Shown: positions 4,674-57,037 of the stretch, one piece after another
How the letters are laid out: each line of letters begins with the position of its first letter
Numbering within the stretch: position 1 is the first letter of the stretch
Assembly: GCA_964036045.1 (NCBI GenBank)
Contig: OZ038378.1
Location: forward strand, 99,448,001-99,512,000
DNA: 64,000 nt
DNA from: Eutreptiella sp. 'Long Island Sound 2002'
Taxonomy: Eukaryota; Protista; Euglenida
Direction: 5' to 3'
Position numbers and translations under genes: made by a program
The notes under the pieces: model-generated
What the model was told of the DNA's origin: nothing
Database searches by the model: none
The model's input: the letters and a program-made list of their open reading frames with translations, nothing else

Positions 4674-7600
4674 CGCTGCCGGTGAAAGCGAGAGGCGGAG
4701 GCCGTGGGGGATGGAAGGGTCGGCCTTGGGATCGTCAAAGGAGAACTCCCGACCCTTGGCCGTGCCGCCTTTGTTAGCAGCCTAGGTGACCTGAGTATGA
4801 AAATTGTTTCCGTGCCATTGGTCTTCAAGTGAGTGAGCGCATCGGCAACGGAGTTTAGGCGCACCCATTTGCCCGCATCTGCGCGCCGTATCCAAAGTGG
4901 ACAAATAAGAAGGGGGTACAATGAGAGAGAAAGAGGTGATGATTACAGTAGTCTTGCAATGGGCACCACCCCTTGACAACCTTTCCTCTAGGCCCTAAAA
5001 CCCACACCCCTGATGAAGTATCCCGGCGCCGTCCCCGTTCCCCTTTGGCAAACGGAATCCTCAACCCAAGAGCCTTCATTCCTTGAGCCCTTGAAGAACC
5101 ATGCCACAACCCTTATCCCCAACTTTTGCTCAAGAAGATTGCCACAACCCTGGACCCCTCTTCATGCCTTGAGAGCCCTCTAAATGACTATCTGCACAAC
5201 CCTGTTGCAGCCATGACCCGACAGCTCGAGTTAACCAGCAACCCCGCACCCTTGCCAATGCATTTGATAGGCATGCTCGTTGGAGTTCCTTTAGTGCTGT
5301 CTTTTGGGTGCTATTCTCTCGGTTGCTCCATTAGTTCTATCTATTTGGACACCACTTCCATTGTTTGTTGTCCCCATGCAACGAGGATGCTTGCAACTCA
5401 TGCAAACCCTTCTACATAAGTTGTGCCGCAGACAAGGTAAAACATACATTTTGTGTGACAAAAAGGGTGCAATGATGGGCAACAAGAGGTGCAATACACA
5501 TATACCTGTAGAAAACATCCAAACAACACAAAAAAGCAGAAAAAAATAGAAAAACAGCACAAATGGGGCGAAAACAGCAAACCAAACAAAATAAACGAAA
5601 AAACACGTTTATTTTCATTTGACCCGCTGACGGGACGGGCAATTATGTGTAGCCTGTCTAGTGGTGGCTTATAGTATCGTAGTCGGTGTGTAGCAAGTTC
5701 TATCCATTGTGCAAGATGCTGGGTCCTTCCCCAAGCTCTCACAATCTAATGACCCGTCACACAAGCGTCAGTGAACTTTGGAAAAGGAGATGCGGTGTCC
5801 TACCTTGCCGGTGAGGGGTCGCACGGCGTCATGGTATTTATATTGCCAAGCAGTCAATTGGTGGTTGATTTGGCCCTCCTTACGTGATTCATTTGTCCAA
5901 GTGTGACCACCATGTGATGAAGGACAACACAAATGCTCCAAGCCTAGGCCGCCCTCCAGCACATCACTCATGATGCAGCGTGCCTTCATCCTCGTTTCGA
6001 TGATAGTGTCTCTCTGGTATTGTAACATGATGCCATCCCAATGTGCCATGTGTTGTGGATTGCCTAGGAACAGTCCCGAAAAATACATCTCGGGATGAGT
6101 ACCGTGTTCATGACGATCGTCTCCTCAAAACAATTCAGTGATAGGGTCTTGTATGCGGAGAGATCATGTCGGGGCTTTGGAGTTAGGCCGCCATCATTCT
6201 CCACGTGTTGTCTTGGTATGTGGGCCGGGCGAGCGTGTGGGGAAGAGGTTAGGACGCATGGCTTTACCGTGAGGTCTTGGCGCTATTAGGAGATCGTTCC
6301 AGGCGCGGAGTGCTAGCCCCATCGGTAGTAGTCAGTTGGTGGTTCATTTGGCTCTCCTTACGTGCATAATTTGTCCTAGTATGAACCACCATGTGATGAA
6401 GGACAACACAAATGCTCCAAGCCTACACCGCCCTCTTGCACATCCGTGATGATGCCGCATTGCTTCATCCTAGTTTCGATGCCAAGGTGTCTCGCTAGTA
6501 TTGTAACATGATGCCATCCCATTGCGCCATGTGTTGTTGATTGCCTATGAACAATCCCTATAAATACACCTCGGGATGAGTACCGAGTTCATGACGGTCG
6601 TCTTCTCAAAGCAATTCACTGATGGGGTTTTGTATGCAGAGAGATCATGTCAGGGCTTTGAACTTGGGCCGTCACCATTTTCCACGTGTTTCCTTTGTAC
6701 GTGGGCTCGGCGAGTATGTGGGGAAATAGGTTGGGACACGTGGTTTTGCTCTAAGGTCTTGGCCCTACTAGGAGATGGCTCCGGGCTCATAGTGCAGGCC
6801 CCATCGTCGGCAGTCAGTTGGTGGTTGAGTTGGCCCTCCTTACGTGCATCATTTGTCCTAATACGACCCACCATGTGATGAAGGAGAACACAAACGCTGG
6901 AACCCTAGAACCCGCCTGCACATCTGTCATGATGTATTGTTGGTTCATCATCGTTTCGATGCCAGGGTGGCTCTGTAGTATTGTAACATGATGCCATTCC
7001 ATTGCAATGTGCGTTGTTGATTCCCCAAAAATAGTCTCCATAAATCCATCTGGGGATGAGTACCGTGTTCATGACAGTCGTCTTCTCAAAGCAATTCACC
7101 GATAGGGTCTTATATCCGGACAGATCATGTCAGGCTATTGGAGTTGGGCCGTCACCATTTTCCGCATTTGGCTTTGAATGTGGGCTGGGCAATTACATTG
7201 GGAAATAGGTTAGGACACGTGCTTTGAATGTAAGGTCTTGGTCCTACGAAGGAGATGGCTCTGGGCGCGTAGTGGTGGCTCCATCGGTGGCAGTCAGTTG
7301 GTGGTTGATTTGGACCTCCCTACCTGCATCTTTTGTCCTGGTGTGACCCGCGATATGATGAAGGACAACAAACATGCTCCAAGCCTAGGCCGCCCTGCTA
7401 CACATCCATCATGATGTAGTGTTGCTTCATCCGGGTTTCGATAACAGGGTGTCTCGCTAGTATGGTAACATGATGCCATTCCATTGCACCATGCGTTTTC
7501 GATTGCCCAGGAACAGTCCCTACAAATCAATCTCGGGATGACTACCATGTTCATCACGTTTGTCTTCTCACAGCAATTCATTGATAGGGTGTGGTATGCG

Positions 7601-8849
7601 GACACATCATGTCAGGCCTTTCGAGTTGGGCTATCAACATTTTCCGCGTGATGTGTTCGGATGTTGGCTGAGCGAGTATGTGGGGAAATAGGTTAGGACA
7701 CGTGGTTTTATTGTAAGGACTGGCCCCTACAAGGAGATTGTTCCGAGCACGTAGTGCTGGCCCCATCGGTGGCAATCAGTTGGTCGTTCATTTGGACCTC
7801 CTTAATTTGATCAAGACGGTCGTCCTCTCAAAGCAATTCCGTGATAGGGTCTTGTATGGGGACAAATGATGCCAAGCCTTTGGAGTTGGGCCGTCACCAT
7901 TTTCCACCTGCTGTCTTTGTATGTGGGCTGGCCGAGTATGTGGGGAAATAGGTTGGGACACACGGTTTTACCGTGAGGTTTTGCCGTTTTGCCCCTACCA
8001 CAAGATGGTTCCAAGCGCGTAGTATTGGCCGCATCGGTGGCAGTGAGGAGGTTGATTTGGCCCTCCTTACGTGCATCATTTGTACTAATGTCACCCACCA
8101 TGTAATGAAGGACAACACAAATGCTCCAAGCCTAGGCCGCCCTCCGGCACATCTGTCATGATGCACTGTTGCTTCATCATGGTTTCGATACCAGGGTGTC
8201 TCTCTAGTATTGCAACATGGTGCTATCCCATTGCGCCATGCAAAGTCAATTGCCTAGGAACATTCCCTATATATCCATCTCGGGATGAGTACCATGTTCA
8301 AGACGGTCGTCTTCTCAAAACGATTCCGTGATAGGGTCTTCGATGCGAACAGATGATGTCAAGCCTTTGGAGTTGGGCCTTAACAATTTTCCTCGTGCTG
8401 TCTTTGTACCTGGGCTGGGCAAGTATGTGGGAATATATGTTGCGACAAGTTGTTTTTACCGTAAGGTGTGGGCCCTACTACGAGATGGTTCCGGGCGCGT
8501 AGTGCTGGCCCATTGGTGACGGTCCGTTGGTGGTTGATTTGGCCCTCCTTACGTGCATCTTTTGCCCTAGTATGATCCACCATGTTGTCAACGACAACGC
8601 ACATGCTCCAAGCCTAGCCCCCCGTCGTGCAGATCCGTCATGATGCACTCCTGCTTCATCATAGTTTCCATAGCAGGGTTTCTCTCTAGTATTGTAACAT
8701 GATGCCATCCCATTGCGTTGTGCGTTGTTGATTGCCCAGGAACAATCCCTATAAATCCATCTAGGGATGAGCACCGAGTTCATGATGGTTGTCTTCTCAA
8801 AGCAATTTAGTGATGGGGTCTTGCATGCGAAGGGGTGATGCCAAACCTT

Positions 8850-11800
8850 TGGAACTGGGCCTTGACAATTTTCCGCATGTTGTCTTTGTATGTTGGCTGG
8901 GCCAGTATGTGGCGAAATGGGTAAGGAAACCTGGTTTTACTGTAAGGTCTTGGCCCTACCACGTGATGGTTCCGAGCTAATAGTGCTGGCCCCATCGGTG
9001 GCAATCAGTTGGTGGTTCATTTGGACCTCCTTACCTGCATCTTTTGTCCTCCTACCACCCACCATGTGATGAAGGGGAACAAAAAAGCCCCAAGCCTAGG
9101 CCGCCCTCCTGCACATGCGTCATGGATGGAGTGTTGCTTCATCATGGTTTCAATACCGGGGGTTCTCTCTAGCATTGTAACGTGATGCTATCCCATTGCA
9201 CCAAACATTGTCCATTGTGTAGGAGAAGTTCCTATAAATCCATCTCAGGATAAGTACCTTTTTCATGACGGTTGTCTTCTCAAAGCAATTCACTCATAGG
9301 GTCCGTGTATGCCGAGAAATCATGTTAGGCCGTTGGACACATGTTACCGTGGTGCTCGTCCTTCATCCTACATTTTTGGGTACATTAAAACCAGGGAATT
9401 TGCCTACAATATTTTCAAAATTACCTGCAAAAATTGCGTGTCATTTTCCCCGGAATCTGCCTTGCGGCGGTGCTTGCTGCCATTCCAGTAAAAACGTACC
9501 CATAGCCTACACGAACTGCAGGTATTTTTACAGGCACATTTGCCGGGTCATCCTGAAGGCAAAGCCTACACGAACTGCAGGCAATTTCACAGGCACATTT
9601 GACGGGTCATCCCGAAGGCAAAGGGTACACGAACTGCAGGTAATTTGATAGGCACATTTGACGCGTTATCCTGAAGCCAAAGCCTACACGAACTGCAGGC
9701 AATTTCACAGGCATTATGGCATGGGAACGTCCTTAAACTTACAGGTACAGGTTTCCAGCAACGAGCATGCATAATCGTGGGTTTTGAACGTGTGCAAATG
9801 CACCTAGGGTACACGGGTGATTTTCAAACCTACGGAAGCAAGAAAGCATGGTATGAAAATTATGTAGGACGAGCACTACGGTGACATGTGACTTGGGCCG
9901 TCACCATCTTCCGCGTGTCGTCTTTGTATGTTGGCTAGGCGAGTATGTGGGAAAATAGTTTAGGACACGTGGTTTTGCTGTGTGGTCCTGGCCCTACAAG
10001 GAGATGGTTCCGACCGCATAGTGCCAGACCCATAGGTAGCGGTCAGTTGGTGGTTGATTTGGCCCTCCTTACGTGCACCAGTCGTACTATTACGACCCAC
10101 CATGTGATGAAGAACAACACAAATGCTCCAAGCCTAGGCCGCCCTCCTAGAGATCCGTCATGATGCAGTATTGCTTCATCATGGTTTCGATGTTGGGGTG
10201 TCTCTCTAGTATTGTAACTTCAGGCGATCCCATTGTGTTGTGCGTTGTTGAATGCCCAGGAACGATCCCTATAAATCCATCTCGGGATGAGTACCGAATT
10301 CATGATGGTTGTCTTCTCAATGCAATTTAGCGATAGGGTCTTGCATGCGGAGGGGGGATGTCAAACCTTTGGAAGTAGGCCTTCACCAATTTTCGCAAGT
10401 TGTCTTCGTATGTTGGCTGGGCGAGTATGTGGCGAAATGGGTTAGGAAACCTAGTTTTACTGTAAGGTCTTCGCCCTACCAGGTGATGGTTCCGAGAGCA
10501 TAGTGCTGACCCCATCGGTGGCAATCAGTTGGTGGTTCATTTGGACCCCCTTACCTGCATCTTTTGTCCTGCTACCACCCACCATGTGATGAAGGGGAAC
10601 AAAAAAGCTCCAAGCCTAGGCCGCCCTCCTGCACATGCGTCATGATGGAGTGTTGCTTCATCATGGTTTGGATACCAGGGGTTCTCTCTAGCATTGTAAC
10701 GTGATGCTATCCCATTGCACCAAGCATTGTCCATTGTGTAGGAGAAGTCCTTGTAAATCCATCTCGGGATAGGTACCTTTTTCACGACGGTTGTCTTCTC
10801 AAAGCAATTCACTCATAGGGTCCTTGTATGCCGAGAAATCATGTTAGGCCGTTGGACACATGTTACCGTGGTGCTCGTCCTTCATCCTACATATTTGGGT
10901 ACATGAAAACGACGAAATTTGCCTGCAATATTTTCAAAATTACCTGCAAAAATTGCGTGTCGTTTTCCCCGGAATCTGCCTTGCGGTGGTGCTTGCTGCC
11001 ACTCCAATAAAAACGCACCCATAGCCTACACCAACTGCACGTATTTTTATAGGCACATTTGCCGGGTCATCCTGAAGGCAAAGGGTACACCAACTGCGGG
11101 TAATTTTATAGGCACATTTGACGGGTCATCCTGAAGCCAACGCCTACACGAACTGCAGGCAATTTCACAGGCATTATGGCATGGGAACGTCCTGAAACTT
11201 ACGGGTGCAAGTTTCCGGCAACGAGCATGCATAATTGTGGGTTTTTAACGTGTGCAAATGCACCTAGGGTACACGGGTGATTTTCAAACCTACGGAAGCA
11301 AGAAAGCATGGTATGAAAATTATGTAGGACGAGCACTACGGTGACATGTGACTTGGGCCGTCACCATTTTCCGCGTGTCGTCTTTGTATGTTGGCTGGGC
11401 GAGTATGTGGGAAAATAGTTTAGGACACGTGGTTTTGCTGTGTGGTCTTGGCCCTACAAGGAGATGGTTGAGAGCGCGCAGTGCCAGCCCCATAGGTAGC
11501 GGTCAGTTGGTGGTTGATTTGGCCCTCCTTACGTGCACCATTTGTACTATTACGACCCACCATGTGATGAAGGACAACACAACTGCTTCAAGCCTAGGCC
11601 GCCCTCCTAGAGATCCGTCATGATGTAGTATTGATTCATCCTGGTTTCGATGTTGGGGTGTCTCTCTAGTATTGTAATTTCATGCGACCCCATTGTGTTG
11701 TGCGTTGTTGAATGCCCAGGGACGATCCCTATAAGTCCATCTCGGGATGAGTACCGAATTCATGATGGTTGTCCTCTCAAAGTAATTTAGCGATAGGGTC

Positions 11801-14800
11801 TTGCATGCGGAGGGGGGATGTCCAACCTTTGGAACTAGCCGTTCACCATTTTTCGCAAGTTGTCTTCGTATGTTGGCTGGGCGAGTATGTGGCGAAATGG
11901 GTTAGAAAACCTGGTTTTGCTGTAAGGTCTTGGCCCTACCAAGTGATGGTTCCGAGCGCATAGTGCTGGCCCCATCGGTGGCAATCAGTCGGTGGTTCAT
12001 TTGGACCTCCTTACCTGCATCTTTTGTCCTCGTACCACCCACCGTGTGATGAAGGGCAACAAAAAAGCTCCAAGCCTAGGCCGCCCTCCTGCACATGCGT
12101 CATGATGGAGTGTTGCTTCATCATGGTTTCAACACCAGGGGTTCTCTCTAGCATTGTAACGTGATGCTATCACATTGCACCAAGCATTGTCCATTGTGTA
12201 GGAGAAGTCCCTATAAATCCATCTCAGGATAAGTACCTTTTTCACGACGGTTGTCTTCTCAAAGCAATTCACTCATAGGGTCCTTGTATGCCGAGAAATC
12301 ATGTTAGGCCGTTGGACACATGTTACCGTCGTGCTCGTCCTTCATCCTACATATTTGGGTAGTTTAGAACCAGGAAATTTGCCTACATTTTTCAAAAGTA
12401 CCTGCAAAAATTGCGTGTCATTTTCCCGGCAAACTACCTCGCGACGGTGCTTGCTGCCTGTCAAGTAAAAACATACCCATAGCCTACACGAACTGCAGGT
12501 ATTTTTACAGGCACGTTTGCCGGGTCATCTTGAAGGCAAAGCCTACACGAACTGCAGGTAATTTTACAGACACATTTGACAGGTCATCATGGAGGCAGAA
12601 GAGTACACGAACTACATATAATTTTACAGGCACATTTGACGTGTCATCCTGAAGGCAAAGCCTACACCGACTGCGGGTAATTTTATAGGCACATTTGACG
12701 GGTCATCCCGAAGTCAAGGCCTACACGAATTGCAGGCAATTTCACAGGCAGTATGGCATGGGAACGTCCCGAAACTTTCAGGTGTAGGTTCCCGGCAACG
12801 AGCATGCATAATCGTGGGTTTTTGACGTGTGCAAATGCACCTAGGGTACACGGGTGATTTTCAAACCTACGGAAGCAAAAAAGCATGGTATGAAAATTAT
12901 GTAGGACGAGCACTACGGTGACATGTGACTTGGGCCGTCACCATTTTCGGCGTGTCTTCTTTGTATGTTGGTTGGGCGAGTATGTGGGAAAATAGTTTAA
13001 GACACGTGGTTTTGCTGTGTGGTCCTGGCCCTACGAGGAGATGGTTACGTGCCTGCCCCATAGGTAGTGGTCATTTGGTGGTTGATTTGGCCCTTACTAC
13101 GTGCACCGTTTGTACTATTACGACCCACCATGTGATGAAGGACAACGCAAATGCTCCAAGCCTAGGCCACCCTCCTAAACATCCGTCATGATGCAGTATT
13201 GCTTCGTCATTGGTTTGATGTTGGGGTGTCTCTCTAGTATTGTAACTTCATGCGATCCCATTGTGCTGTGCGTTGTTGATTGCCCAGGAACACTGCCTAG
13301 AAATCCATCTCGGGATGAGTACCGAATTCATGATGGTTGTCTTCTCAAAGCAATTTAGTGATAGGGTCTTGCATGCGAAGGAGTGATGTCAAACCTTTGG
13401 AACTGGGCCTTCACCATTTTCCGCAAGTTGTTGTCGTATGTTGGCTGGGCGAGTATGTGGCGAAACAGGTTAGGACACGTGGTTTTACTGTAAGGTCTTG
13501 GCCCTACTAGGTGATGGTTCCAAGCGCATAGTGTTGACCCCATCGGTGGCAATCAGTCGGTGGTTCACTTGTACCTCCTTACTTGCAACTTTTGTCCTCC
13601 TACCACCCACCATGTGATGAAGGGGAACAAAAAAGCTCCAAGCCTAGGCCGCCCTCCTGCACATGCGTCATGATGGAGTGTTGCTTCATCATGGTTTCAA
13701 TAACAGGGGTTCTCTCTAGCATTGTAACGTGATGCTATCCCATTGCACCAAGGATTGTCCATTGCGTAGGAGAAGTACCTATAAATCCACCTCGGGATAA
13801 GTACCTTTTTCATGACGGTTGTCTTCTCAAAGCAATTCACTCATAGGGTCCTTGTATGCCGGGAAATCATGTTGGGCCGTTGAACACATGTTACCGTGGT
13901 GTTCGTCCTTCATCCTACATATTTGGGTACATTAAAACCACGAAATTTGCCTACAATATTTTCAAAATTACCTGCAAAAATTGCGTGTCGTTTTCCCCGG
14001 AATCTGCCTTGCGGTGGTGCTTGCTGCCACTCCAATAAAAACGCACCCATAGCCTACACGAACTGCACGTATTTTTATAGGCACATTTGCAGGCTCAACC
14101 TAAAGGCAAAGCCTACACGAACTGCAAACAATTGCACAGGCACATTTGACCGGTCATGCTGAAGGCAAAGGGTACACCGACCGCGGGTAATTTATAGGCA
14201 AATTTGACGGGTCATCCTGAAGGCAAAGCCTACACGAACTGCAGGCAATTTCACAGGCGCATTTGACAGGTCATCCTGAAGGCAAAGCCTACACCGACTG
14301 CGGGTAATTTTATAAGCACATTTGACGGGTCATCCTGAAGCCAAAGCCTACACGAACTGCAGACAATTTCACAGGCATTATGGCATGGGAACGTCCCGAA
14401 ACTTACAGGTGCGGGTTTCCGGCAACGAGCATGCATAATCGTGGGTTTTTAACGTGTGCAAATGCACCTAGGGTACACGGGTGATTTTCAAACCTACGGA
14501 GGCAAGAAAGCATGGTATGAAAATAATGTAGGACGAGCACTACGGTGACATGTGACTTGGGCCGTCACCATTTTCCGCGTGTCATCTTTGTATGTTGGCT
14601 GGGCGAGTATGTGGGAAAATAGTTTAGGACACGTGGTTTTGCTGTGTGGTCTTGGCCCTACAAGGAGATGGTTCCGACCGCGTAGTGCCAGCCCCATAGG
14701 TAGCGGTCAGTTGGTGGTTGATTTGGCCCTCCTTACGTGCACCATTTGTACTATTACAACCCACCATGTGATGAAGAACAACACAAATGCTCCAAGCCGA

Positions 14801-17800
14801 GGCCGCCCTCCTAGAGATCCGTCATGATGTAGTATTGATTCATCCTGGTTTCCATGTTGGGGTGTCTCTCTAGTATTGTAACTTCAGGCGATCCCATTGT
14901 GTTGTGCGTTGTTGAATGCCCAGGAACGATCCCTATAAATCCATCTCGGGATGAGTACCGAATTCATGATGGTTGTCTTCTCAAAGCAATTTAGCGATAG
15001 GGTCTTGCATGCAGGGGGGGGTGTCAAACCTTTGGAACTAGGCCTTCCCCATTTTCCGCAAGTTGTCTTCGTATGTTGGCTGGGCGAGTATGTGGCGAAA
15101 CAGGTTAGGACACGTGGTTTTACTGTAAGGTCTTGGCCCTACCACGTGATGGTTCCAAGCGCATAGTGTTGACCCCATCGGTGGCAATCAGTTGGTGGTT
15201 CATTTGTACCTCCTTACCTGCATCTTTTGTCCTCCTACCACCCACCATGCGATGAAGGGGAACAAAAAAGCTCCAAGCCTAGGCCGCCCTCCTGCACATG
15301 CGTCATGATGGAGTGTTGCTTCATCATGGTTTCAATACCAGGGATTCTCTCTAGCATTGTAATGTGATGCTATCCCATTGCACCAAGGATTGTCCATTGC
15401 GTAGGAGAAGTCCCTATAAATCCATCTCGGGATAAGTACCTTTTTCATGACGGTCGTCTTCTCAAAGCAATTCACTCATAGGGTCCTTGTATGCCGAGAA
15501 ATCATGTTAGGCCGTTGTACACATGTTACCGTGGTGCTCGTCCTTCATCCTACATATTTGGGTACATTAAACCCACGAAATTTGCCTACAATATTTTCAA
15601 AATTACCTGCAAAAATTGCGTGTCGTTTTCCCCGGAATCTGCCTTGCGCTGGTGCTTGCTGCCACTCCAATAAAAACGCACCCATAGCCTACACGAACTG
15701 CACGTATTTTTACGGGCACATTTGCCGGCTCAACCTAAAGGCAAAGCCTACACGAACTGCAGGTATTATCACAGGCACATTTGACCGGTCATGCTGAAGG
15801 CAAAGGGTACACCGATTGCGGGTAATTTTATAGGCACATTTGACGGGTCATCCTGAAGGCAAAGCCTACACGAACTGCAGGCAATTTCGCAGGCACATTT
15901 GACGGGTCATCCTGAAGGCAAAGCCTACACCAACTGCGGGTAATTTGATAGGCACATTTGACGGGTCATCCCGAAGGCAAAGCCTACACGAATTGCAGGC
16001 AATTTCACAGGCATTATGGCATGGGAACGTCCTGAAACTTACAGGTGCAGGTTTCCGGCAACGAGCATGCATAATCGTGGGTTTTTAACGTGTGCAAATG
16101 CACCTAGGGTACACGGGTGATTTTCAAACCTACGGAAGCAAGAAAGCATGGTATGAAAGGTATGTAGGACGAGCACTACGGTGACATGTGACTTGGGCCG
16201 TCACCATTTTCGGCGTGTCGTCCTTGTATGTTGGCTAGGCGAGTATGTGGGAAAATAGTTTAGGACACGTGGTTTTGCTGTGTGGTCTTGGCCCTACAAG
16301 GAGATGGTTCCGAGCGCGCAGTGCCGGCCCCATAGGTAGCGGTCAGTTTGTGGTTGATTTGGCCCTCCTTACGTGCACCATTTGTACTATTACGACCCAC
16401 CATGTGATGAAGAACAACACCAATGCTCCAAGCCTAGGCCGCCCTCCTAGAGATCCGTCATAATGTAGTATTGATTCATCCTGGTTTCCATGTTGGGGTG
16501 TCTCTCTAGTATTGTAACTTCAGGCGATCCCATTCTGTTGTGCGTTGTTGAATGCCCAGGAACGATCCCTATAAATCCATCTCGGGATGAGTACCGAATT
16601 CATGATGGTTGTCTTCTCAAAGCAATTTAGCGATAGGGTCTTGCATGCGGAGGGGGGATGTCAAACCTTTGGAACTAGGCCTTCACCATTTTCCGCAAGT
16701 TGTCTTCGTATGTTGGCTGGGCGAGTATGTGGCGAAATGGGTTAGGAAACCTGGTTTTACTGTAAGGTCTTGGCCCTACCAAGTGATGCTTCCGAGCTAA
16801 TAGTGCTGGCCCCATCGGTGGCAATCAATTGGTGGTTCATTTGTACCTCCTTACCTGCATCTTTTGTCCTCGTACCACCCACCATGTGATGAAGGGGAAC
16901 AAAAAAGCTCCAAGCCTAGGCCGCCCTCCTGCACATGCGTCATGATGGAGTGTTGCTTCATCATGGTTTCAATACCAGGGGTTCTTTCTAGCATTGTAAC
17001 GTGATGCTATCCCATTGCACCAAGCATTGTCCATTGTGTAGGAGAAGTCCCTATAAATCCATCTCGGGATAAGTACCTTTTTCACGACGGTTGTCTTCTC
17101 AAAGCAATTCACTCATAGGGTCCTTGTATGCCGAGAAATCATGTTAGGCCGTTGGACACATGTTACCGTGGTGCTCGTCCTTCATCCTACATATTTGGGT
17201 ACATCAAAAACACGAAATTTGCCTACAATATTTTCAAAATTACCTGCAAAAATTGCGTGTCGTTTTCCCCGGAATCTGCCTTGCGGTGGTGTTTGCTGCC
17301 ACTCCAATAAAAACGCACCGATAGCGTACACGAACTGCAGGTATTTTTACAGGCACATTTGCCGGGTCATCCTGAAGGCAAAGGGTACACGAACTGCACG
17401 TAATTTCACAGGCACATTTGACGGGTCATGCTGAAGGCAAAGCCTACACCGACCGCGAGTAATTTTATAGGCACATTTGACGGGTCATCCTCCAGGCAAA
17501 GCCTACACGAACTGCAGGCAATTTCACAGACATTATGGCATGGGAACGTCCTGAAACTTACAGGTGCGGGTCTCCGGCAACGTGCATGCATAATCCTGCG
17601 TTTTTAACGTGTGCAAATGCACCTAGGGTACACGGGTGATTTTCAAACCTACGGAAGCAAGAAAGCATGGTATGAAAATTATGTAGGACGAGCACTACGG
17701 TGACATGTGACTTGGGCCGTCACCATTTTCCGCGTGTTGTCTTTGTATGTTGGCTGGGCGAGTATGTGGGAAAATAGTTTAGGACACGTGGTTTTGCTGT

Positions 17801-20800
17801 GTGGTCTTGGCCCTACAAGGAGATGGTTCAGAGCGCGTAGTGCCAGCCCCATAGGTAGGGGTCAGTTGGTGGTTGATTTGGCCCTCCTTACGTGCACCAT
17901 TTGTACTATCACGACCCACCATGTGATGAAGAACAACACAAATGCTCCAAGCCTAGGCCGCCCTCCTAGAGATCCGTCATAATGTAGTATTGCTTCATCC
18001 TGGTTTCGATGTTGGGGTGTCTCTCTAGTAATGTAACTTCATGCGATCCCATTGTGTTGTGCGTTGTTGAATGCCCATGAACGAGGCCTATAAATCCATC
18101 TCGGGATGAGTACCGAATTCATGATGGTTGTCTTCTCAATGGAATTTAGCGATAGGGTCTGGCATGCGGAGGGGGGATGTCAAACCTTTGGAACTAGGCC
18201 TTCACCATTTTCCGCAAGTTGTCGTCGTATGTTGGCTAGGCGAGTATGTGGCGAAATGGGTTAGGAAACCTGGTTTTACTGTAAGGTCTTGGCCCTACCA
18301 GGTGATGGTTCCGAGCGCATAGTGCTGGCCCCTTCGGTGGCAATCAGTTGGTGGTTGATTTGGACCTCCTTACTTACATTTTTCGTCCTCCTACCACGCA
18401 CCATGTGATGAAGGGGAACAAAAAAGCTCCAAGCTTAGGCCGCCCTCCTGCACATGCGTCATGATGGAGTGTTGCTTCATCATGGTTTCAATACCAGGGG
18501 GTCTCTCTAGCATTGTAACGTGATGCTATCACATTGCACCAAGCATTGTCCATTGTGTAGGAGAAGTCCCTATAAATCCATCTCGGGATAAATACCTTTT
18601 TCACGACGGTTGTCTTCTCAAAGCAATTCACTCATAGGGTCCTTGTATGCCGAGAAATCATGTTAGGCCGTTGGACACATGTTACCGTGGTGTTCGTCCT
18701 TCATCCTACATATTTGGGTACATTAAAACCACGAAATTTGCCTACAATATTTTCAAAATTACCTGCAAAAATTGCGTGTCGTTTTCCCCGGAATCTGCCC
18801 TGCGCTGGTGCTTGCTGCAACTCCAATAAAAACGCACCCATAGCCCACACGAACTGCAGGTATTTTTACAGGCACATTTGCCGGGTTATCCTGAAGGCAA
18901 AGGGTACACGAACTGCACGTAATTTTATAGGCACATTTGACGGGTCGTCTTGAAGGCAAAGCCTACACAAACTGCAGGCAATTTCACAGGCATTATGGCA
19001 TGGGAACGTCCTGAAACTTACAGGTGCGGGTCTCCGGCAACGTGCATGCATAATCGTGGGGTTTTAACGTGTGCAAATGCACCTAGGGTACACGGGTGAT
19101 TTTCAAACCTAAGGAAGCAAGAAAGCATGGTATGAAAACAATGTAGGACGAGCACTACGGTGACATGTGACTTGGGCCATCACCATTTTCCGCGTGTCGT
19201 CCTTGTATGTTGGCTGGGCGAGTATGTGGAAAAATACTTTAGGACACGTGGTTTCGCTGTGTGGTCCTGGCTCTACAAGGAGATGGTTCCGAGCGCGTAG
19301 TGCCGGCCCCATAGGTAGCGGTCAGTTGGTGGTTGATTTGGCCCTTCTTACGTGCACCATTTGTACTAGAACAACACAAATGCTCCAAGCCTAGGCCGCC
19401 CTCCTAGAGATCTATCATGATGTTGTATTGCTTCATCTTGGTTTCGATGTTGGGGTGTCTCTCTAGTATTGTAATTTCATGCGACCCCATTGTGTTGTGC
19501 GTTGTTGAATGCCCAGGAACGATCCCTATAAATCCCTCTCGCGATGAGTACCGAGTTCATGATGGTTGTCTTCTCAAAGCAATTCAGTGATAGGATCTTG
19601 CATGCGAAGGGGGGATGTCAAACCTTTGGAACCGGGCCTTCACCATTTTTCGAAAGTTGTCGTCGTATGTTGGCTGGGCGAGTATGTGGCGAAACAGGTT
19701 AGGACACGTGGTTTCACTGTAAGGTCTTGGCCCTACCAAGTGATGGTTCCAAGCGCATAGTGCTGGCCCCATCATTGGCAATCAGTGGGTGGTTCATTTG
19801 TACCTCCTTACCTGCATCTTCCGTCCTCATACCACCCACCATGTGATGAAGGGGAACAAAAAAGCTCCAAGCTTAGGCCGCCCTCCTGCACATGCGTCAT
19901 GATGGAGTGTTGCTTCATCATGGTTTGGATACCAGGGGTTCTCTCTAGCATTGTAACGTGATGCTATCCCATTGCACCAAGCATTGTCCATTGCGTAGGA
20001 GAAGTCCATATAAATCCATCTTGGGATAAGTACCTTTTTCATGACGGTTGTTTTCTCAAAGCAATTCACTCATAGGGTCCTTGTATGCGGAGAAATCATG
20101 TTAGGCCATTGGACACATGTTACCGTGGTGCTCGTCCTTCATTCTACATATTTGGGTACATTAAAAGCACGAAATTTGCCTGCAATGTTTTCGAAATTAC
20201 GTGAAAAATTGCATGTCGTTTTCCCCGGAATCTGCCTTGCGCTGGTGCTTGCTGCCAGTCCAGTAAAAACGTACCCATAGCCTACACGAACTGCAGGTAA
20301 ATTTACAGGCACATTTGCCGGGTCATCCTGAAGGCAAAGGGGACACGAACTGCAGGTAATTTCACAGGCATTATGGCATGGGAACGTCGTGAAACTTACA
20401 GGTGCAGGTTTCTGGCAACGAGCATGCATAATCGCGGGTTTTTAACGTGTGCAAATGCACCTGGGGTACACGGGTGATTTTCAAACCTACGGAAGCAAGA
20501 AAGCATGGTATGAAAATTATGTAGGACGAGCACTACGGTGACATGTGACTTGGGCCGTCACCATTTTACGCGTGTCGTCTTTGTATGTTGGCTGGGCGAG
20601 TATGTGGGAAAATAGTTTAGGACACGTGGCTTTGCTGTTTGGTCTTGGCCCTACAAGGAGATGGTTCAGAGCGCGTAGTGCCAGCCCCATAGGTAGGGGT
20701 CAGTTGGTGGTTGATTTGGCCCTCCTTACGTGCACCATTTGTACTATCACGACCCACCATGTGATGAAGAACAACACAAATGCTCCAAGCCTAGGCCGCC

Positions 20801-23760
20801 CTCCTAGAGATCTGTCATGATGTAGTAATGCTTCATCCTGGTTTCGATGTTGGGGTGTCTCTCTAGTAATGTAACTTCATGCGATCCCATTGTGTTGTGC
20901 GTTGTTGAATGCCCATGAACGAGGCCTATAAATCCATCTCGGCATGAGTACCGAATTCATGATGGTTGTCTTCTCAATGGAATTTAGCGATAGGGTCTTG
21001 CATGCGGAGGGGGGATGTCAAACCTTTGGAACTAGGCCTTCACCATTTTCCGCAAGTTGTCGTCGTATGTTGGCTAGGCGAGTATGTGGCGAAATGGGTT
21101 AGGAAACCTGGTTTTACTGTAAGGTCTTGGCCCTACCAGGTGATGGTTCCGAGCGCATAGTGCTGGCCCCATCGGTGGCAATCAGTTGGTGGTTGATTTG
21201 GACCTCCTTACTTACATTTTTCGTCCTCCTACCACGCACCATGTGATGAAGGGGAACAAAAAAGCTCCAAGCCTAGGCCGCCCTCCTGCACATGCGTCAT
21301 GATGGAGTGTTGCTTCATCATGGTTTCAATACTAGGGGGTCTCTCTAGCATTGTAACGTGATGCTATCCCATTGCACCAAGCATTGTCCATTGTGTAGGA
21401 GAAGTCCAGATAATTCCATCTCGGGATGAATACCTTTTTCACGACGGTTGTCTTCTCAAAGCAATTCACTCATAGGGTCCTTGTATGCCGAGAAATCATG
21501 TTAGGCCGTTGCACACATGTTACCGTGGTGTTCGTCCTTCATCCTACATATTTGGGTACATTAAAACCACGAAATTTGCCTACAATATTTTCAAAATTAC
21601 CTGCAAAAATTGCGTGTCGTTTTCCCCGGAATCTGCCTTGCGCTGGTGCTTGCTGCAACTCCAATAAAAACGCACCCATGGCCCACACGAATTGCACGTA
21701 TTTTTACAGGCACATTTGCCGGGTTATCCTGAAGGCAAAGGGTACACGAACTGCACGTAATTTTATAGGCACATTTGACGGGTCATCCTGAAGGCAATGC
21801 CTACAAAAAGTGCACGCAATTTCACAGGCATTATGGCATGGGAACGTCCTGAAACTTACAGATGCGGTTCTCCGGCAACGTGCATGCATAATCGTGGGTT
21901 TTTAACATGTGCAAATGCACCTAGGGTCCACGGGTGATTTTCAAACCTAAGGAAGCAAGAAAGCATGGTATGAAAACAATGTAGGACGAGCACTACGGTG
22001 ACATGTGACTTGGGCCGTCACCATTTTCCGCGTGTCGTCCTTGTATGTTGGCTGGGCGAGTATGTGGAAAAATAGTTTAGGACACGTGGTTTTGCTGTGT
22101 GGTCCTGGCTCTACAAGGAGATGGTTCCGAGCGCGTAGTGCCGGCCCCATAGGTAGCGGTCAGTTGGTGGTTGATTTGGCCCTCCTTACGTGCACCATTT
22201 GTACTAGAACAACACAAATGCTCCAAGCCTAGGCCGCCCTCCTAGAGATCTGTCATGATGTTGTATTGCTTCATCTTGGTTTCGATGTTGGGGTGTCTCT
22301 CTAGTTTTGTAATTTCATGCGACCCCATTGTGTTGTGCGTTGTTGAACGCCCAGGAACGATCCCTATAAATCCCTCTCGCGATGAGTACCGAGTTCATGA
22401 TGGTTGTCTTCTCAAAGCAATTCAGTGATAGGGTCTTGCATGCGAAGGGGGGGTGTCAAACCTTTGGAACCGGGCCTTCACCATTTTTCGAAAGTTGTCG
22501 TCGTATGTTGGCTGGGCGAGTATGTGGCGAAACAGGTTAGGACACGTGGTTTCACTGTAAGGTCTTGGCCCTACCAAGTGATGGTTCCAAGCGCATAGTG
22601 CTGGCCCCATCAGTGGCAATCAGTGGGTGGTTCATTTGTACCTCCTTACCTGCATCTTCCGTCCTCGTACCACCCACCATGTGATGAAGGGGAACAAAAA
22701 AGCTCCAAGCTTAGGCCGCCCTCCTGCACATGCGTCATGATGGAGTGTTGCTTCATCATGGTTTGGATACCAGGGGTTCTCTCTAGCATTGTAACGTGAT
22801 GCTATCCCATTGCACCAAGCATTGTCCATTGCGTAGGAGAAGTCCATATAAATCCATCTTGGGATAAGTACCTTTTTCATGACGGTTGTTTTCTCAAAGC
22901 AATTCACTCATAGGGTCCTTGTATGCGGAGAAATCATGTTAGGCCATTGGACACATGTTACCGTGGTGCTCGTCCTTCATCCTACATATTTGGGTACATT
23001 AAAAGCACGAAATTTGCCTGCAATGTTTTCGAAATTACCTGAAAAATTGCGTGTCGTTTTCCCCGGAATCTGCCTTGCGCTGGTGCTTGCTGCCAGTCCA
23101 GTAAAAACGTACCCATAGCCTACACGAACTGCAGGGAATTTTACAGGCACATTTGCCGGGTCATCCTGAAGGCAAAGGGGACACGAACTGCAGGTAATTT
23201 CACAGGCATCAGGGCATGGGAACGTCCTGAAACTTACAGGTGCAGGTTGCTGGCAACGAGCATGCATAATCGCGGGTTTTTAACGTGTGCAAATGCACCT
23301 GGGGTACACGGGTGATTTTCAAACCTACGGAAGCAAGAAAGCATGTTATGAAAATAATGTAGGACGAGCACTACGGTGACATGTGACTTGGGCCGTCACC
23401 ATTTTACGCGTGTCGTCTTTGTATGTTGGCTGGGCGAGTATGTGGGAAAATAGTTTAGGACACGTGGTTTTGCTGTGTGGTCCTGGCCCTACAAGGAGAT
23501 GGTTCAGAGCGCGTAGTGCCGGCCCCATAGGTAGGGGTCAGTTGTTGGTTGATTTGGCCCTTACCGCGTGCACCATTTGTACTATTACGACCCACCATGT
23601 GATGAAGGAGAACACAAATGCTCCAAGCCTAGGCCGCCCTCCTAAACATCCGTCATGATGCAGTATCGCTTCATCATGGTTTCAATGTTGGGGTGTCTCT
23701 CTAGTATTGTAACTTCATGCGATCCCATTGTGCTTTGCGTTGTTGATTGCCTAAGAACAC
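8850..23760. repeat. Higher-order repeat, 10 units of 1400-1637 bp, each two 481-bp monomers plus one MITE
   Basis: MITE starts at 9339, 10858, 12318, 13886, 15521, 17158, 18677, 20115, 21515 and 22953 (spacings 1519, 1460, 1568, 1635, 1637, 1519, 1438, 1400, 1438). Confidence 0.95.
9339..9889. mobile_element. Non-autonomous TIR element (MITE) inserted in the satellite monomer; first of 10 copies
   Basis: 28-bp TIRs acatgttaccgtggtgctcgtccttcat / atgtaggacgagcactacggtgacatgt (3 mismatches). GAC lies on both sides, and the empty site reads ttggacttggg at ~24350. An internal 59-bp tandem repeat is present. Confidence 0.85.
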
Positions 23761-26049
23761 CCCCTATAAATCCATCTTGGGATGAGTACCGAGTTCATGA
23801 TGGTTGTCTTCTCAAAGCAATTTAGTGATAGGGTCTCGGGTGCTGAGGGATAATGTCAAATCTTTGGACCGGGGCCGTCACCATTTGACGCGTGTTGACT
23901 TTGTATGTGGGCACGGCTAGTATGTGGGAAAATGGGTTAGAACACGTGGTTTTACCGTGAGGTCTTGGCCCGACAAGATGATGGTTCCGAGCGCGTAGTG
24001 TTGGCCCCATCGGTGGCAGTCAATCAGTGGTTCATTTGGCCGTCCTTACGTGCATGACTTGTCCCAGTACGACCCACCGTGTGATGAAGGGGAGCACAAA
24101 TGTTCCAAACCTAGGCCGCCCATTTTACACATCCGTCATGATGCAGTGTTGCTTCATCGTCGTTTCAATGCCGGGGGTGTCTCTCTAGTATTGTAACTTC
24201 TTGCGATCCCATTGTGCCAGGTGTTGTTGATTGCCTAGGAACAACCCCTGCAAATCCATCTCGGGATGATTATCGAGTTCATGACGGTTGTCTTGTCAAA
24301 GCAATTCAGTAATAGGGTCTTGTATGTCGAGAGATCATGCCACGCCTTTGGACTTGGGCAGTCACCATTTTACGCGTGTTGACTTCCTTTGTGGGCCGGG
24401 CGAGTAGGTGGGAAAATAGGTTAGCACACATGGTTTTGCTGTAAGGTCTTGGTCCTACGAGGAGATGGTTCCGGGCGCGCAGTGTTGGCCGCATCGGTGG
24501 CAGTTAGTGGGTGGTTGATTTGAACCTCCTTACGTGCATCTTTTGTCCTGGTGTGACCCACGATGTGGTGAAGGACAACACGAATGCTCCCAACATCTTC
24601 CCCCCCCCCCTACATGTCCGTCATGACGCAGTGTCGCTTCATCTTGGCTTCGATGCCAGGGTGTCCCTCTAGTATTGCAACATGATCCTATCCCATTGCG
24701 CCATGCGTTGTCGATTGCCGACGAATAGTCCCTACAAATCCGTATCCGGATGAGTACCGTGTTCATGACAGTTGTCTCCCAAAGCAACTGAGTGATACGG
24801 TCTTGTATGTGGACAAAACATGTGAGGCCTTTGGAGTTGGGCCGTCATCATTTTCCACGTGCTGTCTTTGTATGTGGGCTGGGCGGGTATGTGGAGAAGG
24901 AAGGTTTGGACACGTGGTTTTGGCGTAACGTCTTGGCCCAACCAAGAGATGGTACCGGGGGCATAGTGTTGGCCCCATCGGGAGCACGCCGCGGACGGTT
25001 GATTTGGCCCCGCTTACGTGCATCATTTGTCCTAGTGTGACCCAGTATGTGATGAAGGACAACACAAATGCTCCAAGCCTAGGCCACCGTCCTGCAAATC
25101 CTTCATGATGCAGTGTCGCTTCATCCCAGTATCGATGCCAGGGTGTCTCTCTAGTATTGTGACATGATGCCATCCTATTGCGCCATGCGTTGTCGATTGC
25201 CTAAGAACTGTCCCTATCAATCCATCCCGGGATGAGCACCGTAGTCATGACGGTGGTCTTCTCAAAGCGTTTCGGTCATAGGGTTCTCTATGCGGACAGA
25301 TCATATTAGGCCTTTGGAGTTGGGTCGTCAGCATTTCGCGCGTCTTCTCTTTGTATGTGGGCTAGGCGAGTATGTGGGGAAATATGTTAGGACACGTGGT
25401 TTTACTGCAAGGTCTGGGCCCTACCACGAGATGGGGACGAGCGCCTAGTGCTGGCCCCAGAGGTAGCCATCACTGCGTGGTCGATTTGGCCCTCTTTACG
25501 TGCATCATTTGTCCTAGTGGACCTTCCATATGATGAAGGGGGACACAAATGCTCCAAGCCTAGGCCGCCTTTTGCACATCCTTTATGATGCCGTGTTGCT
25601 TTAGCCTAGTTTCGATGCTGGGGTATCTTTCTAGCATTTTAACATGAAGCCATCCCAATGCGCCACGCGTTGTCCATTGCCTACGCCAGCAACCTGCTAG
25701 AAATCCAATAGTGGTGTAACGGTTTTGTTCTAACGTTCCAATTGGAACAGTCAGAACACTTCGAGTGTCCACTTGTGTACCCTTGGGGGTGTTCCCCCCC
25801 CTTTTTTTGGGGGGGGGGGGGCTTTGAGGGCCAAAAATAGTTGCTACGAAGTCCAGAAGGACTTTTTTTTCAAAAAAATGAATTTCTTCCACTTATTGGG
25901 TAGAAAGTTTGTTGAGTTCTAATTGTGTTCTAGCGCTTTTGGGAGCACCGCCGTTAGAACGCCGTTAGAACAATCTTATTGGAACATGAGTAGAACACTT
26001 TTGGCAAAGGCACACAGCACAAAACATTTGGTAATTTTTTTCACTAAAC

Positions 26050-26656: not shown

Positions 26657-27816
26657 CTACACCCCTCCACCACACGGCTCTAAGGTACGTGCGAAGGGCA
26701 CAACGTGGTGCATACATGTGGTCGAAGGGGCTAAACTTAGTCAAAACCGGGTCAAAATGGGATAAGAACACTTGTCCGAGCGTCCCAAATGGTTCGGGAT
26801 CACTTGTGGAAAAACGCGTTTACGACCAAGTTTTGACCCAGTTTTGGTTCCAAAAGGACCCTTTTTCAAGGCATTTTGGGATTTTCCATGGGTCAAAATG
26901 CGTCACCACGGGCTCAAAAACGGCTAAACCCACTTGTTTGAGCATCCCAAATGGTCCAGGATCACTTTTGGAAAAATGTGTTTTTGACCCATTTTCGACC
27001 CATTTTGGGTCCCAAAACGGCCCATTTTCAAGGCATTTTGGGATTTTCCATGGCCCAAAACGCGCCACCACCGGCTCAAAACGGGCTAAAAACACTTGTT
27101 CGAGCAACGAAGTGGTCTGAGAAAATTTTTGAAAAAAAATCTTTTTTTCGCCCCGGGGACCCTGGTGGACCCACCATGGGCCCCTGCCGTGCGCGGGCCG
27201 GGCTGCCCTCCAATTCCACCAAGTGACCACTGGTACGGGGGTGTAGGCGTCTCGTTGGGCGTTCCGAGGCTTGGAAACCACAAAAAGTGGGGGGTTGCGG
27301 ATGGACTAGGGGTCCTCGGAATTCGGTTTTGAGCCACGTAGCTCAAGATACGGCCCGTCCTTGGTTTCGGGGTGTTGGTGCACATTGCGCAGATTTAGGG
27401 GCTTTTTGGCGCCTTTTTGGGCCGTTTCTCCGACATATCGTGGAGTTGAAGGGCACTAGAGGGCTCCTTCACACGCTGAAGTCAAGCCGCACGTGAGTTG
27501 TAGCCAGTGTTTCCCTTCGTTTGGGCGTTTCGCCCGGGTTCGGGGGCCTTTTTGGGCGAAAAATGGCTACCTTTGGCCCAAAACTGCGCAGTTTTGGGAG
27601 GGCACCTCCCGACTTGGCGCCACCGCCCCGGGCCGCCACCGGTGAATTTCCAGCTGAAAACTTGGATTCGGCAAGGCCACCACCTAGGCTCTAGGATGGC
27701 TGAAGTAAAGTCAAGCGCGAGGTGATGGGAAGGGGCAATAGCCAAAACAAAACGGTGACGTGCTTGTTGTTGTTGCTTGTTGCTTGTTAACTAAATTTAA
27801 GGGGAGAGGGGTGTAG
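26657..27816 (+). mobile_element. Non-autonomous TIR element family A in (TA)n, copy 1
   Basis: Left end ctacacccctcc, right end ggggagaggggtgtag followed by TA. Internal 162-bp subrepeats; (TA)n on both sides. Confidence 0.85.
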
Positions 27817-29144: not shown

Positions 29145-29344
29145 NNNNNNNNNNNNNNNNNNNNNNNNNNNNNNNNNNNNNNNNNNNNNNNNNNNNNNNN
29201 NNNNNNNNNNNNNNNNNNNNNNNNNNNNNNNNNNNNNNNNNNNNNNNNNNNNNNNNNNNNNNNNNNNNNNNNNNNNNNNNNNNNNNNNNNNNNNNNNNNN
29301 NNNNNNNNNNNNNNNNNNNNNNNNNNNNNNNNNNNNNNNNNNNN
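29145..29344. other. Assembly gap, 200 N
   Basis: Directly visible; true size unknown. Confidence 1.
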
Positions 29345-30214: not shown

Positions 30215-31400
30215 TACACCCCTCTCCCCAACTCAAGGTGGCTCCACCATACGGCTCTAAGGTACATGCGAAGGGCACAATGTGGTGCATACATGTGGTG
30301 GAAGGGGCAAAACTTGGTCAAAACGGAGTCGTAATGTGCTAAAAACACTTGTTTGAGCATGACAAATGGTGCGGGATCACTTGTGGAAAAACACGTTTTT
30401 GACCCATTTTTGACCAATTTTTGGTCCCAAAACGACCCATTTTCAAGGCATTTTGGGATTTTCCATGGTCCTAAACGCATAAACTCGTGCTCTAAATGGG
30501 CTAAAATCACTTGTTTGAGCATCATAAATGGCCCAGGATCACTTTCGGAAAAATGTGTTTTTGACCCAGTTTCGGCCAATTTTTGGTCTTGAAACAGCCC
30601 ATTTTCAAGGCATTTGGGGATTTTCCGTGGCCCAAAACGCGCCACCACGGGCTAAAAACGGGCTAAAAACACGTGTTTCAGCATCCCAAGTGGTCTGGGA
30701 ACAACTTTGAAAAAAATCCTTTTTTTGCCCCGGGGACCCTGGTGGACCCACCGTGGGCCCCCGCCGTGCGCAGGCCCGGCTACCCTCCCCGGCTGTACCA
30801 AGTGACCAGTGGTACGGGGGTCTAGCCGTCCGTTTGGGCGATTTTGAGTGGTGGAAACCACAAAAAGTGGGGGGTTGCGGGTCCACTAGGTGCCCTCAGA
30901 ATTCAGTTTTGAGCCACGTAGCCCAAGATACGGCCCGTGCTTGGTTTCGGGGTGTTGGTGCACATTACGCGGTTTTTGGGGCTTTTTGGCGCCTTTTTGG
31001 GCCGTTTCTCGGACCTATCGTGGAGTTGAAGGGGACTAGAGGGCTCTTTGACGCAGCGAAGTCAAGCCGCACGTGGGCTGCAGCCACCATTTCCCTTGGT
31101 TTGGGCGTTTCGCCCGGGTTTGAGGGCTATTTTGGGCGAAAAATGGCTACCTTTGGCCCAAAACTGCGCAGTTTTGGGAGGGCACCTCCCGAGTTGGCGC
31201 CGCCGCCCCGGGCCGCCACCAGTGAGTTTCTGGCTGAAAACTTGGATTTGGCAAGACCACCACCTAGGCTCTAGGATGGCTAAAGTAGAGTCAAGCCCGA
31301 GGCGATTGGAAGGGACAATGGCGAAAACGGAACGGTGACGTGCTTGTTGCTTGTTGTTGCTTGATGCTTGTTAGCTAAATTTAAGGGGAGAGGGGTGTAG
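30215..31400 (+). mobile_element. Family A element, full-length copy
   Basis: tacacccctctcccc...ggggagaggggtgtag|TA, with 162-bp subrepeats near 30343, 30505 and 30667. Confidence 0.88.
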
Positions 31401-56313: not shown

Positions 56314-57037
56314 CTATGCGCCAATTCCTATGGGGGTCTGGACCCCCAAAATAATTGACCCGACCCTATGCGTCAATTCCTAGGGGGGTCTAGACCCCCA
56401 AAATAATTGACGCGACCTTATGTGTCAATTCCTAGGGGGGTCCAGACCCCCAAAATAATTGACGCGACCCTATGCGCCAATTCCTACGGGGGTCTGGACC
56501 CCCAAAATAATTGACGCGACCCTATGCGTCAATTCCTAAGGGGGGTCTAGACCCCCAAAATAATTGACGCGACCCTATGCGCCAATTTCTATGGGGGTCT
56601 AGACCCCCAAAATAATTGACGCGACCCTATGCGTCAATTCCTACGGGGGTCTAGACCCCAAAAATAATTGATGCGACCCTATGCGTCAATTCCTAGGGGG
56701 GTCTAGACCCCCAAAATAATTGACGCGACCCTATGCATCAATTCGTATGGGGGTCTAGACCCCCAAAAAAATTGACGCGACCCAATGCGTCAATTCCTAG
56801 GGGGGTCTAGACCCCCCAAAAAATTGACGCGATCCTATGCGTCAATTCCTAGGGGGGTCTAGACCCCCAAAATAATTGACGCGACCCTATGCGCCAATTT
56901 CTATAGGGGTCTAGACCCCCAAAATAATTGACGCGACCCTATGCGTCAATTCCTACGGGGGTCTGGACCCCCAAAAAAAATTGACGCGACCCTATGTGTC
57001 AATTCCTAGGGGGGTCTAGACCCCCAAAATAATTGAC
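56314..57037. repeat. 52-bp palindromic tandem repeat, ~14 copies
   Basis: ctatgcgtcaattcctaggggggtctagacccccaaaataattgacgcgacc. Confidence 0.97.

Follow-up and report, generated by a model that had tools for sequence, protein, structure and literature searches.

A higher-order repeat of two monomers and a miniature inverted-repeat element in a single tandem array of the euglenid Eutreptiella

In this study, we analyzed a 64,000-nucleotide stretch of the genome of the euglenid Eutreptiella sp. 'Long Island Sound 2002' (assembly GCA_964036045.1, contig OZ038378.1; C1:99,448,001-99,512,000, hereafter the window), in which ten copies of a miniature inverted-repeat transposable element (MITE) sit in a tandem array whose period is about 483 bp. 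Together with two distinguishable monomers, A and B, the element forms the unit of a higher-order repeat (HOR). In the best reading of our data, this unit of element, A and B was very probably copied as a whole after a single insertion. The element itself duplicates only one base pair of its target, which is the less ordinary point of the locus. Positions without a prefix refer to the window, and the genome searches described below cover the 2.28-Gb assembly of 2,317 contigs.

Organization and history of the higher-order domain

Tandem Repeats Finder and BLAST delimited the array at 5853-25707, within which related monomers of 480-488 bp are arranged head-to-tail from one end to the other. A multimeric unit with a period of 1400-1637 bp is present in ten tandem copies (Table 1). 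Its elements are separated by spacers of 944-966 bp, each filled by an A monomer of 461-483 bp and a B monomer of 483 bp, and monomers at the same position in different units are far more alike than neighbors within a unit, as is characteristic of a HOR. Exact-word searches gave the same junctions, ...ccgttgga/CACATG...CATGTG/acttgggcc, in ten of ten copies, the only differences being single-base changes in the monomers on either side. The claim of an earlier sequence-only reading of this DNA, that the element sits at the identical site in every unit, was borne out, and the span of 9339-23384 given there corresponds to the outer limits of the elements (9338 and 23385) less one base at each end. 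The elements are 434, 494, 553, 611 or 670/671 bp in length, a variation that comes only from the one to five full copies of an internal 59-bp minisatellite, and about 25 of the 27 positions of their terminal inverted repeats (TIRs) match between the two ends.

A maximum-likelihood tree of 28 monomers (10 A, 10 B and 8 flanking) contained the two HOR-specific clades that had been predicted. The A monomers (n = 10) grouped with a support of 100/99 and the B monomers (n = 10) with 100/100, and the flanking monomers (n = 8) were placed on long separate branches (0.10-0.14, versus 0.00-0.05 within the A and B clades). Mean identity was 93.2% among A monomers, 93.9% among B monomers, 76.4% between A and B, and 79.0% among flanking monomers. 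The arms of the array elements, at a mean identity of 94.0%, are level with A and B. A second tree was built from the arms of the ten array elements and 12 dispersed copies, with the minisatellite excluded. A branch with a support of 95/96 separates all ten array elements from the dispersed copies, and the array elements have four private diagnostic columns in common.

The genealogies of the three components of the unit are also linked. Distance matrices were correlated between A and B (Mantel r 0.64, p 0.0002), between A and the element on its left (r 0.79, p 0.002) and between B and either neighboring element (r 0.27-0.42), while shifted controls gave no correlation (r 0.06, 0.09 and -0.18). 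Element copy 3 and monomer A3 are jointly the most diverged components. We also searched for the HOR at other loci, as had been proposed; the junction between a B monomer and the element is present at this locus only. Element-free junctions of similar sequence mark each boundary from A to B and are also present in the flanks.

Ten independent insertions at a preferred junction, with each A/B dimer hit separately, would be a different route to this arrangement. The family does have a weak target pattern (C at -3 and G at +3, each in 14 of 21 dispersed copies), which speaks for some site preference, but the array site, with g at -3 and t at +3, is without that pattern. Independent insertions would also leave the A and B clades unexplained. 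The identical junctions, the grouping of the array elements by their four private characters, a genealogy matching that of the adjoining monomers, the junction unique to this locus and the empty junctions in the flanks and at all A-to-B boundaries together make independent site-specific insertions extremely unlikely, and argue that the unit was copied whole. One insertion followed by amplification of the whole unit, as first read from the sequence, is therefore supported by the common site, the two clades, the equal divergence of the components and their linked genealogies.

A younger duplication is nested in this domain. The two adjacent two-unit blocks (Table 1) align without gaps at an identity of 98.06% (55 mismatches), and six sister pairs were strongly supported (A6/A8, B6/B8, E7/E9, A7/A9, B7/B9 and E8/E10, where E denotes the element copy). 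Hence, the two-unit block was duplicated more recently. This exact tandem block bears on the possibility of gene conversion, in which an existing dimeric array would have been homogenized from one element-bearing dimer while its copy number stayed the same. Under gene conversion, identical clades and an equal agreement between components would be expected, and the flanking monomers give a hint of older types resembling A and B (82-89% support). However, these monomers show no regular alternation of the two types, the 2,838-bp block demonstrates that duplication operates at the locus, and filling nine empty sites by conversion with an insertion of 434-671 bp is a less economical route than duplicating units. 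We consider gene conversion unlikely.

An assembly artifact, with repeat copies expanded or mis-joined, was weighed as well. Tandem arrays are prone to such errors, and a gap of 200 N (29145-29344) lies 3.4 kb past the right end of the array. The assembly letters of the array itself contain no N, its units are all distinct (0.4-11% per component) and its elements fall into five length classes. Because an artifact would give identical copies, we assign this explanation a very small probability.

Whole-unit copying after one insertion can be accounted for by unequal exchange, which we infer to have acted as the amplifier once the insertion had taken place. The MITE, with its CAC...GTG ends, 27-nt TIRs and 59-bp minisatellite, would have landed a single time at the junction between two monomers of an old, diverged 483-bp array, duplicating 1 bp. 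The block of MITE, A and B would then have been duplicated when monomers two units apart, 79% identical to each other, exchanged out of register; the same outcome is expected from template switching during replication and from exchange involving sister chromatids or homologues. The resulting near-identical blocks of 1.4-1.6 kb would have recombined far more readily than the 79%-identical old monomers, leaving ten units in the middle of the array and diverged monomers at its edges. Later, slippage would have altered the number of 59-bp repeats (1-5), small deletions would have arisen in A3 and in A7 and A9, and the two-unit block would have been duplicated again.

Several points weigh against whole-unit copying after one insertion, or limit it. 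The array elements are split from the dispersed ones by a short branch (0.0025 + 0.017), in a tree that sampled only 12 dispersed copies. Since the element tree is unrooted, the expected monophyly of the array elements stands as a grouping on one side of a branch and not formally as a clade. Copy number and unit order come from the assembly alone, and exchange, gene conversion and replication slippage are indistinguishable from one sequence. Finally, nothing shows that the element promoted the amplification; it marks the unit.

The array belongs to this locus. With two monomers as the query, the only genome-wide matches to the 483-bp monomer were at C1:99,453,850-99,473,707 (about 20 kb); outside the array locus, the whole-genome search matched only a 77-bp piece of the monomer, at 73-81% identity. 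As the monomer search matches one locus only, we regard the sequence as a single-locus array and not as a genome-wide satellite. Of the earlier designation as a satellite, the tandem array is real, but it is a single array found nowhere else in the genome. Classical satellite DNA is abundant and occupies many loci or heterochromatin, and an array of about 20 kb at one locus does not belong to that class. No open reading frame (ORF) of at least 150 aa occurs between 4921 and 25976, and transfer RNA and Rfam searches of the array gave no match. The left flank contains a phase break at approximately 7799-7884, where a monomer ends at its position 177 and the next piece restarts at about 411, corresponding to an internal deletion of about 233 bp.

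Table 1 Features of the 483-bp array and its higher-order domain (window coordinates)
Feature	Position	Strand	Remarks
Old left-flank monomers	5853..8853	+	element-free; ~79% identical to each other
Higher-order domain, B0 to A10	8854..23868	+	ten units (B monomer / MITE / A monomer)
MITE copy 1	9338..9890	+	553 bp; 3 full 59-bp motifs
Dimer A1 + B1	9891..10856	+	A1 9891-10373; B1 10374-10856
MITE copy 2	10857..11350	+	494 bp; 2 motifs
Dimer A2 + B2	11351..12316	+	split 11833/11834
MITE copy 3	12317..12927	+	611 bp; 4 motifs; most diverged MITE copy
Dimer A3 + B3	12928..13884	+	A3 474 bp, 9 bp shorter; split 13401/13402
MITE copy 4	13885..14554	+	670 bp; 5 motifs
Dimer A4 + B4	14555..15519	+	split 15036/15037
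MITE copy 5	15520..16190	+	671 bp; 5 motifs
Dimer A5 + B5	16191..17156	+	split 16673/16674
MITE copy 6	17157..17709	+	553 bp; 3 motifs
Two-unit block, first copy	17710..20547	+	2,838 bp; A6 B6 MITE7 A7 B7 MITE8
MITE copy 7	18676..19169	+	494 bp; sister of copy 9
MITE copy 8	20114..20547	+	434 bp; sister of copy 10
Two-unit block, second copy	20548..23385	+	2,838 bp; A8 B8 MITE9 A9 B9 MITE10
MITE copy 9	21514..22007	+	494 bp
MITE copy 10	22952..23385	+	434 bp
A10	23386..23868	+	last A-clade monomer; right edge of the higher-order domain
Old right-flank monomers	23869..25707	+	element-free

The dispersed element family and its target site

The element is a true, non-autonomous MITE. It measures 434-671 bp and has TIRs, it has many dispersed copies at unrelated sites, and it has no coding capacity, its interior being a minisatellite. 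The family has at least 206 candidate places in the genome, on many chromosomes and at 83-91% identity. A 25-base TIR pattern, allowing up to two mismatches, had 282 genome matches on more than 15 chromosomes, versus none for the reversed-pattern control. These matches correspond to approximately 140 elements, 10 of which are in the array; tandem amplification has accordingly supplied about 7% of the family, in agreement with the earlier proposal that a MITE can multiply without transposition. Dispersed copies are 93.3% alike, compared with 94.0% for the array copies, and 21 of the dispersed copies have 400-bp flanks that show no relationship among themselves. No further copy or fragment of the element was found in the 64-kb window.

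The TIR of the MITE begins CACATGTYACCGT; its right-end TIR starts CACATGTC, and its left-end TIR reads CACATGTT. Dispersed copies retain the CACATG...CATGTG termini; seven of them have single-base variants. In the sequence-only reading, the ends had been parsed as GAC/ACATGT...ACATGT/GAC, giving a target-site duplication (TSD) of 3 bp. Because the CAC...GTG termini are conserved in the 21 dispersed copies, the C and G of this 'GAC' belong to the element, and the dispersed copies together with two sets of empty sites revise the duplication to 1 bp. In 20 of the 21 copies, the single bases directly outside the left and right termini are identical, and the other flank offsets, including -2/-3 versus +2/+3, agree at chance level (3-9 of 21).

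The empty sites were obtained from host repeats with 2,337 (copy L060) and 41 (copy L003) candidate places. For L060 (C8:46,509,093-46,509,292), six uninterrupted paralogues read ...tttgcca/catcatt... and the filled site reads ...gcca[CAC..GTG]acatcg..., with a duplicated A. For L003 (C4:51,437,656-51,437,815), six paralogues read ...ggaccac/gtctctc... and the filled site reads ...gaccac[CAC..GTG]cgtctctc..., with a duplicated C. Both comparisons show one base gained besides the element. The site in the array itself, ...ttgga[...]acttggg..., fits a duplicated A; its sister monomers leave it undecided because junction length varies among them (TTGGAGTT, TTGGACTT and TTGGAACT). The C at -3 and G at +3 noted above suggest a loosely palindromic target of the form C-N-x-N-G, judging from the flanks of the dispersed copies. 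Transposon types with 3-bp TSDs (CACTA/EnSpm, PIF/Harbinger and Zator) were considered and rejected, as there is no 3-bp direct repeat and the empty sites gain 1 bp. A literature search for '1-bp TSD' found no paper with that phrase.

Long members of the family reach 5-13 kb, with an interior made of kilobases of 63-bp and 85-bp satellite. They include L075 (C4:44,645,585-44,651,758, 6.2 kb), L076 (C1:77,824,993-77,829,986, 5 kb) and L077 (C2:141,838,381 onward, 13 kb), the last of which contains 114 copies of the 63-bp unit. The MITE family acts as a satellite carrier. In two further copies, L022 and L025, the minisatellite contains inserts of 730 and 357 bp, respectively, that are unrelated to it. 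These five members were examined as candidates for an autonomous partner, and none of them encodes a transposase.

Two other candidate assignments were also rejected. A second MITE-bearing array at C6:62.10 Mb proved to be just a solo exact match to the 27-bp right TIR, the rest of the element being absent. The surrounding sequence (L078, C6:62,093,000-62,102,999) contains a 3.2-kb unit repeated at least three times, with 98% identity between the two copies read and no long ORF. Non-conventional introns of euglenids have the form 5'-N3-CDG ... CH'G-N5-6/R (PMC12501133). The element starts with CAC-ATG and ends with GAC-ATGTG or TGA-CATGTG, so that it has neither CDG at +4..+6 nor CHG at -8 or -9.

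RAG1/Transib-fold transposases in the same genome

A separate 6.9-kb element at C1:196,751,133-196,758,061 (read in C1:196,750,984-196,758,211) begins with CACATGTCGC and ends with GCGACATGTG, flanked by a c on either side. Its first 8 bases equal those of the right-end TIR of the MITE, and the TIRs of the two elements differ beyond base 10. It contains 94-bp internal repeats and a transposase ORF that is interrupted by a stop. The 496-aa ORF had no match in Pfam and no significant sequence match in PDB (the only hit had an E-value of 1.2), and a word-index protein search with the transposase returned relatives only from the same or very similar species. A language-model search with the ORF returned RAG1 clusters (score 0.94), and a library-wide HMMER search found 198 relatives of the transposase.

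An AlphaFold model based on an alignment of 55 sequences had a predicted local distance difference test (pLDDT) score of 80.3 and a predicted template modeling (pTM) score of 0.75; with 8 sequences, the pLDDT was 33. Foldseek gave 47 matches in PDB with E-values of at most 0.001. Among those listed are RAG1, amphioxus BbRAGL and the Transib transposase of Helicoverpa (HzTransib), with probabilities of 0.99-1.00 over 465-650 alignment columns. The template modeling scores of these comparisons were low (0.24-0.42), in keeping with a flexible protein of several domains. The transposase family conserves, in order, D-G, A-D-H-H, C-x2-C, H-x4-H and E, that is, a D, D, C(2)C, H(4)H, E layout.

This RAG1-fold family has 2,114 candidate places in the genome (e.g., C2:115,273,024-115,274,877, C2:192,643,138 and C4:62,496,049). 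In one sub-family, at 37% identity to the query, at least 17 copies have no stops in the matched segment, with an open frame of about 849 aa. Judging by these stop-free segments, this sub-family may still be active. No transposase place lies within 10 kb of a MITE TIR, among the places and TIRs listed.

The EnSpm/Mirage/Chapaev/Transib (CMCT) clade comprises EnSpm/CACTA, Mirage, Chapaev and Transib, with RAG1 as a derivative, and is characterized by CA..TG termini, duplications of 2-5 bp and a layout of DDE, C(2)C and H(3-4)H (PMC12730594). The CAC...GTG termini of the MITE fit the CA..TG termini of this clade, whereas its 1-bp duplication falls outside the range of 2-5 bp. The RAG1/Transib fold and the motif layout are features of the separate 6.9-kb element, while the MITE encodes nothing. 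From the 8 terminal bases and the identity of the 1-bp flanks that the two elements share, we infer that the MITE is a putative non-autonomous member of a CAC-terminus group with RAG1-fold transposases. That it belongs to a euglenid RAG1/Transib-fold (CMCT) lineage with CACATGT termini that duplicates 1 bp on integration is possible, and we propose it tentatively. If so, a RAG1-type enzyme would join the transposon ends to target phosphates staggered by one nucleotide, within a C-N-x-N-G site. Should the 1-bp duplication prove to be the work of RAG1-fold transposases present in this genome, the known range of target-joining geometry in that enzyme family would become broader.

These transposases raise the question of whether the element drove the amplification of the array. 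Breaks at the element ends, through aborted excision or aberrant transposition, could have been repaired from a misaligned sister chromatid, producing tandem units. The genome does contain RAG1-fold transposase genes with uninterrupted frames, and the similar identities of dispersed and array copies indicate that the family was mobile around the time of amplification. Against this, excision footprints are absent, none of the units has its boundary where an element ends, and the 2,838-bp duplication can be phased anywhere in the unit. A transposase-driven origin is accordingly highly improbable; ordinary unequal exchange is sufficient, and the element is not needed as a driver.

Known systems and other repeats

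For a satellite with a co-amplified insert, the classical case is that of 1.711a and 1.711b in cattle. Streeck is said to have described them in 1981 as a satellite interrupted by a mobile-element-like insert, with both amplified together. The unit of 1.711b is about 2.6 kb (PMC7644632). The bovine satellites extend over millions of bases genome-wide, whereas ten units at one locus are present here.

In the theory of Stephan (1989), as summarized by McGurk and Barbash in 2018, unequal exchange forms higher-order repeats (PMC5932611). McGurk and Barbash expected unequal exchange to organize deletions and transposable element insertions into HORs and inferred this for the R1 array of Drosophila (PMC5932611). 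In the R1 array, likewise, a structural variant would have given rise to a variant-bearing multimer as the new unit, with a homogenized core and diverged edges. For Drosophila, the inference was drawn from the copy numbers of junctions and not from assembled units; here, the history is legible in one assembled 20-kb locus, with a MITE and in a euglenid host. In the human genome, Hoyt et al. described tandem composite units of transposable elements and satellites 'evolving as a single unit' (bioRxiv 10.1101/2021.07.12.451456). These composites are mostly larger and often occupy several loci, in contrast to the single 15-kb domain described here, which keeps pre-insertion monomers on both sides.

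MITEs that contain tandem repeats are also known, such as DTC84 of the clam Donax trunculus (PMC3879986), and transitions from MITE to satellite, as well as composite satellite monomers with transposable element parts, have been reviewed (PMC12628747). MITEs of the DTC84 type have central short tandem repeats between TIR-bearing arms, as in the present element. In those cases and in MITE-to-satellite transitions, the satellite grows from the element, while in the Eutreptiella array the element is a passenger in an unrelated satellite. Given these descriptions (PMC5932611; bioRxiv 10.1101/2021.07.12.451456; PMC12628747), the process is known and the idea is not new. Transposon-bearing higher-order or composite repeats have already been described, and the locus is a clear new euglenid instance of them. 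Its value as a compact record of HOR formation lies in four stages preserved side by side in 20 kb: old diverged monomers, the one insertion of a marker, a tenfold amplification and a younger two-unit duplication. The minisatellite of the element provides an extra marker of later change. Being small, the array could also be used to test how fast unequal exchange proceeds in a euglenid; the repeat biology of euglenids is almost unstudied.

The window contains further repeats outside the array. ORFs elsewhere in the window had no match in Pfam. Two tandem repeats of one 162-bp family, with 2.2 copies each, are located at 26746-27106 and 30333-30693, on either side of the 200-N gap. At 45956-47932, a degenerate 7-bp repeat (CCACAGA) with about 280 copies stands opposite its complement (GTGGTCT-type) at 45595-45768, forming a fold-back. 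A 52-bp satellite with 13.9 copies at 56314-57037 is directly followed by a 41-bp satellite, which comprises about 170 copies with 93% matches, runs past the end of the window (64000) and has a strong skew of G over C. In the genome at large, a 24-base word of the Euglena gracilis spliced leader had 5,458 matches versus none for the reversed control. On chromosome 1, these matches are spread over both strands and do not form one cluster.

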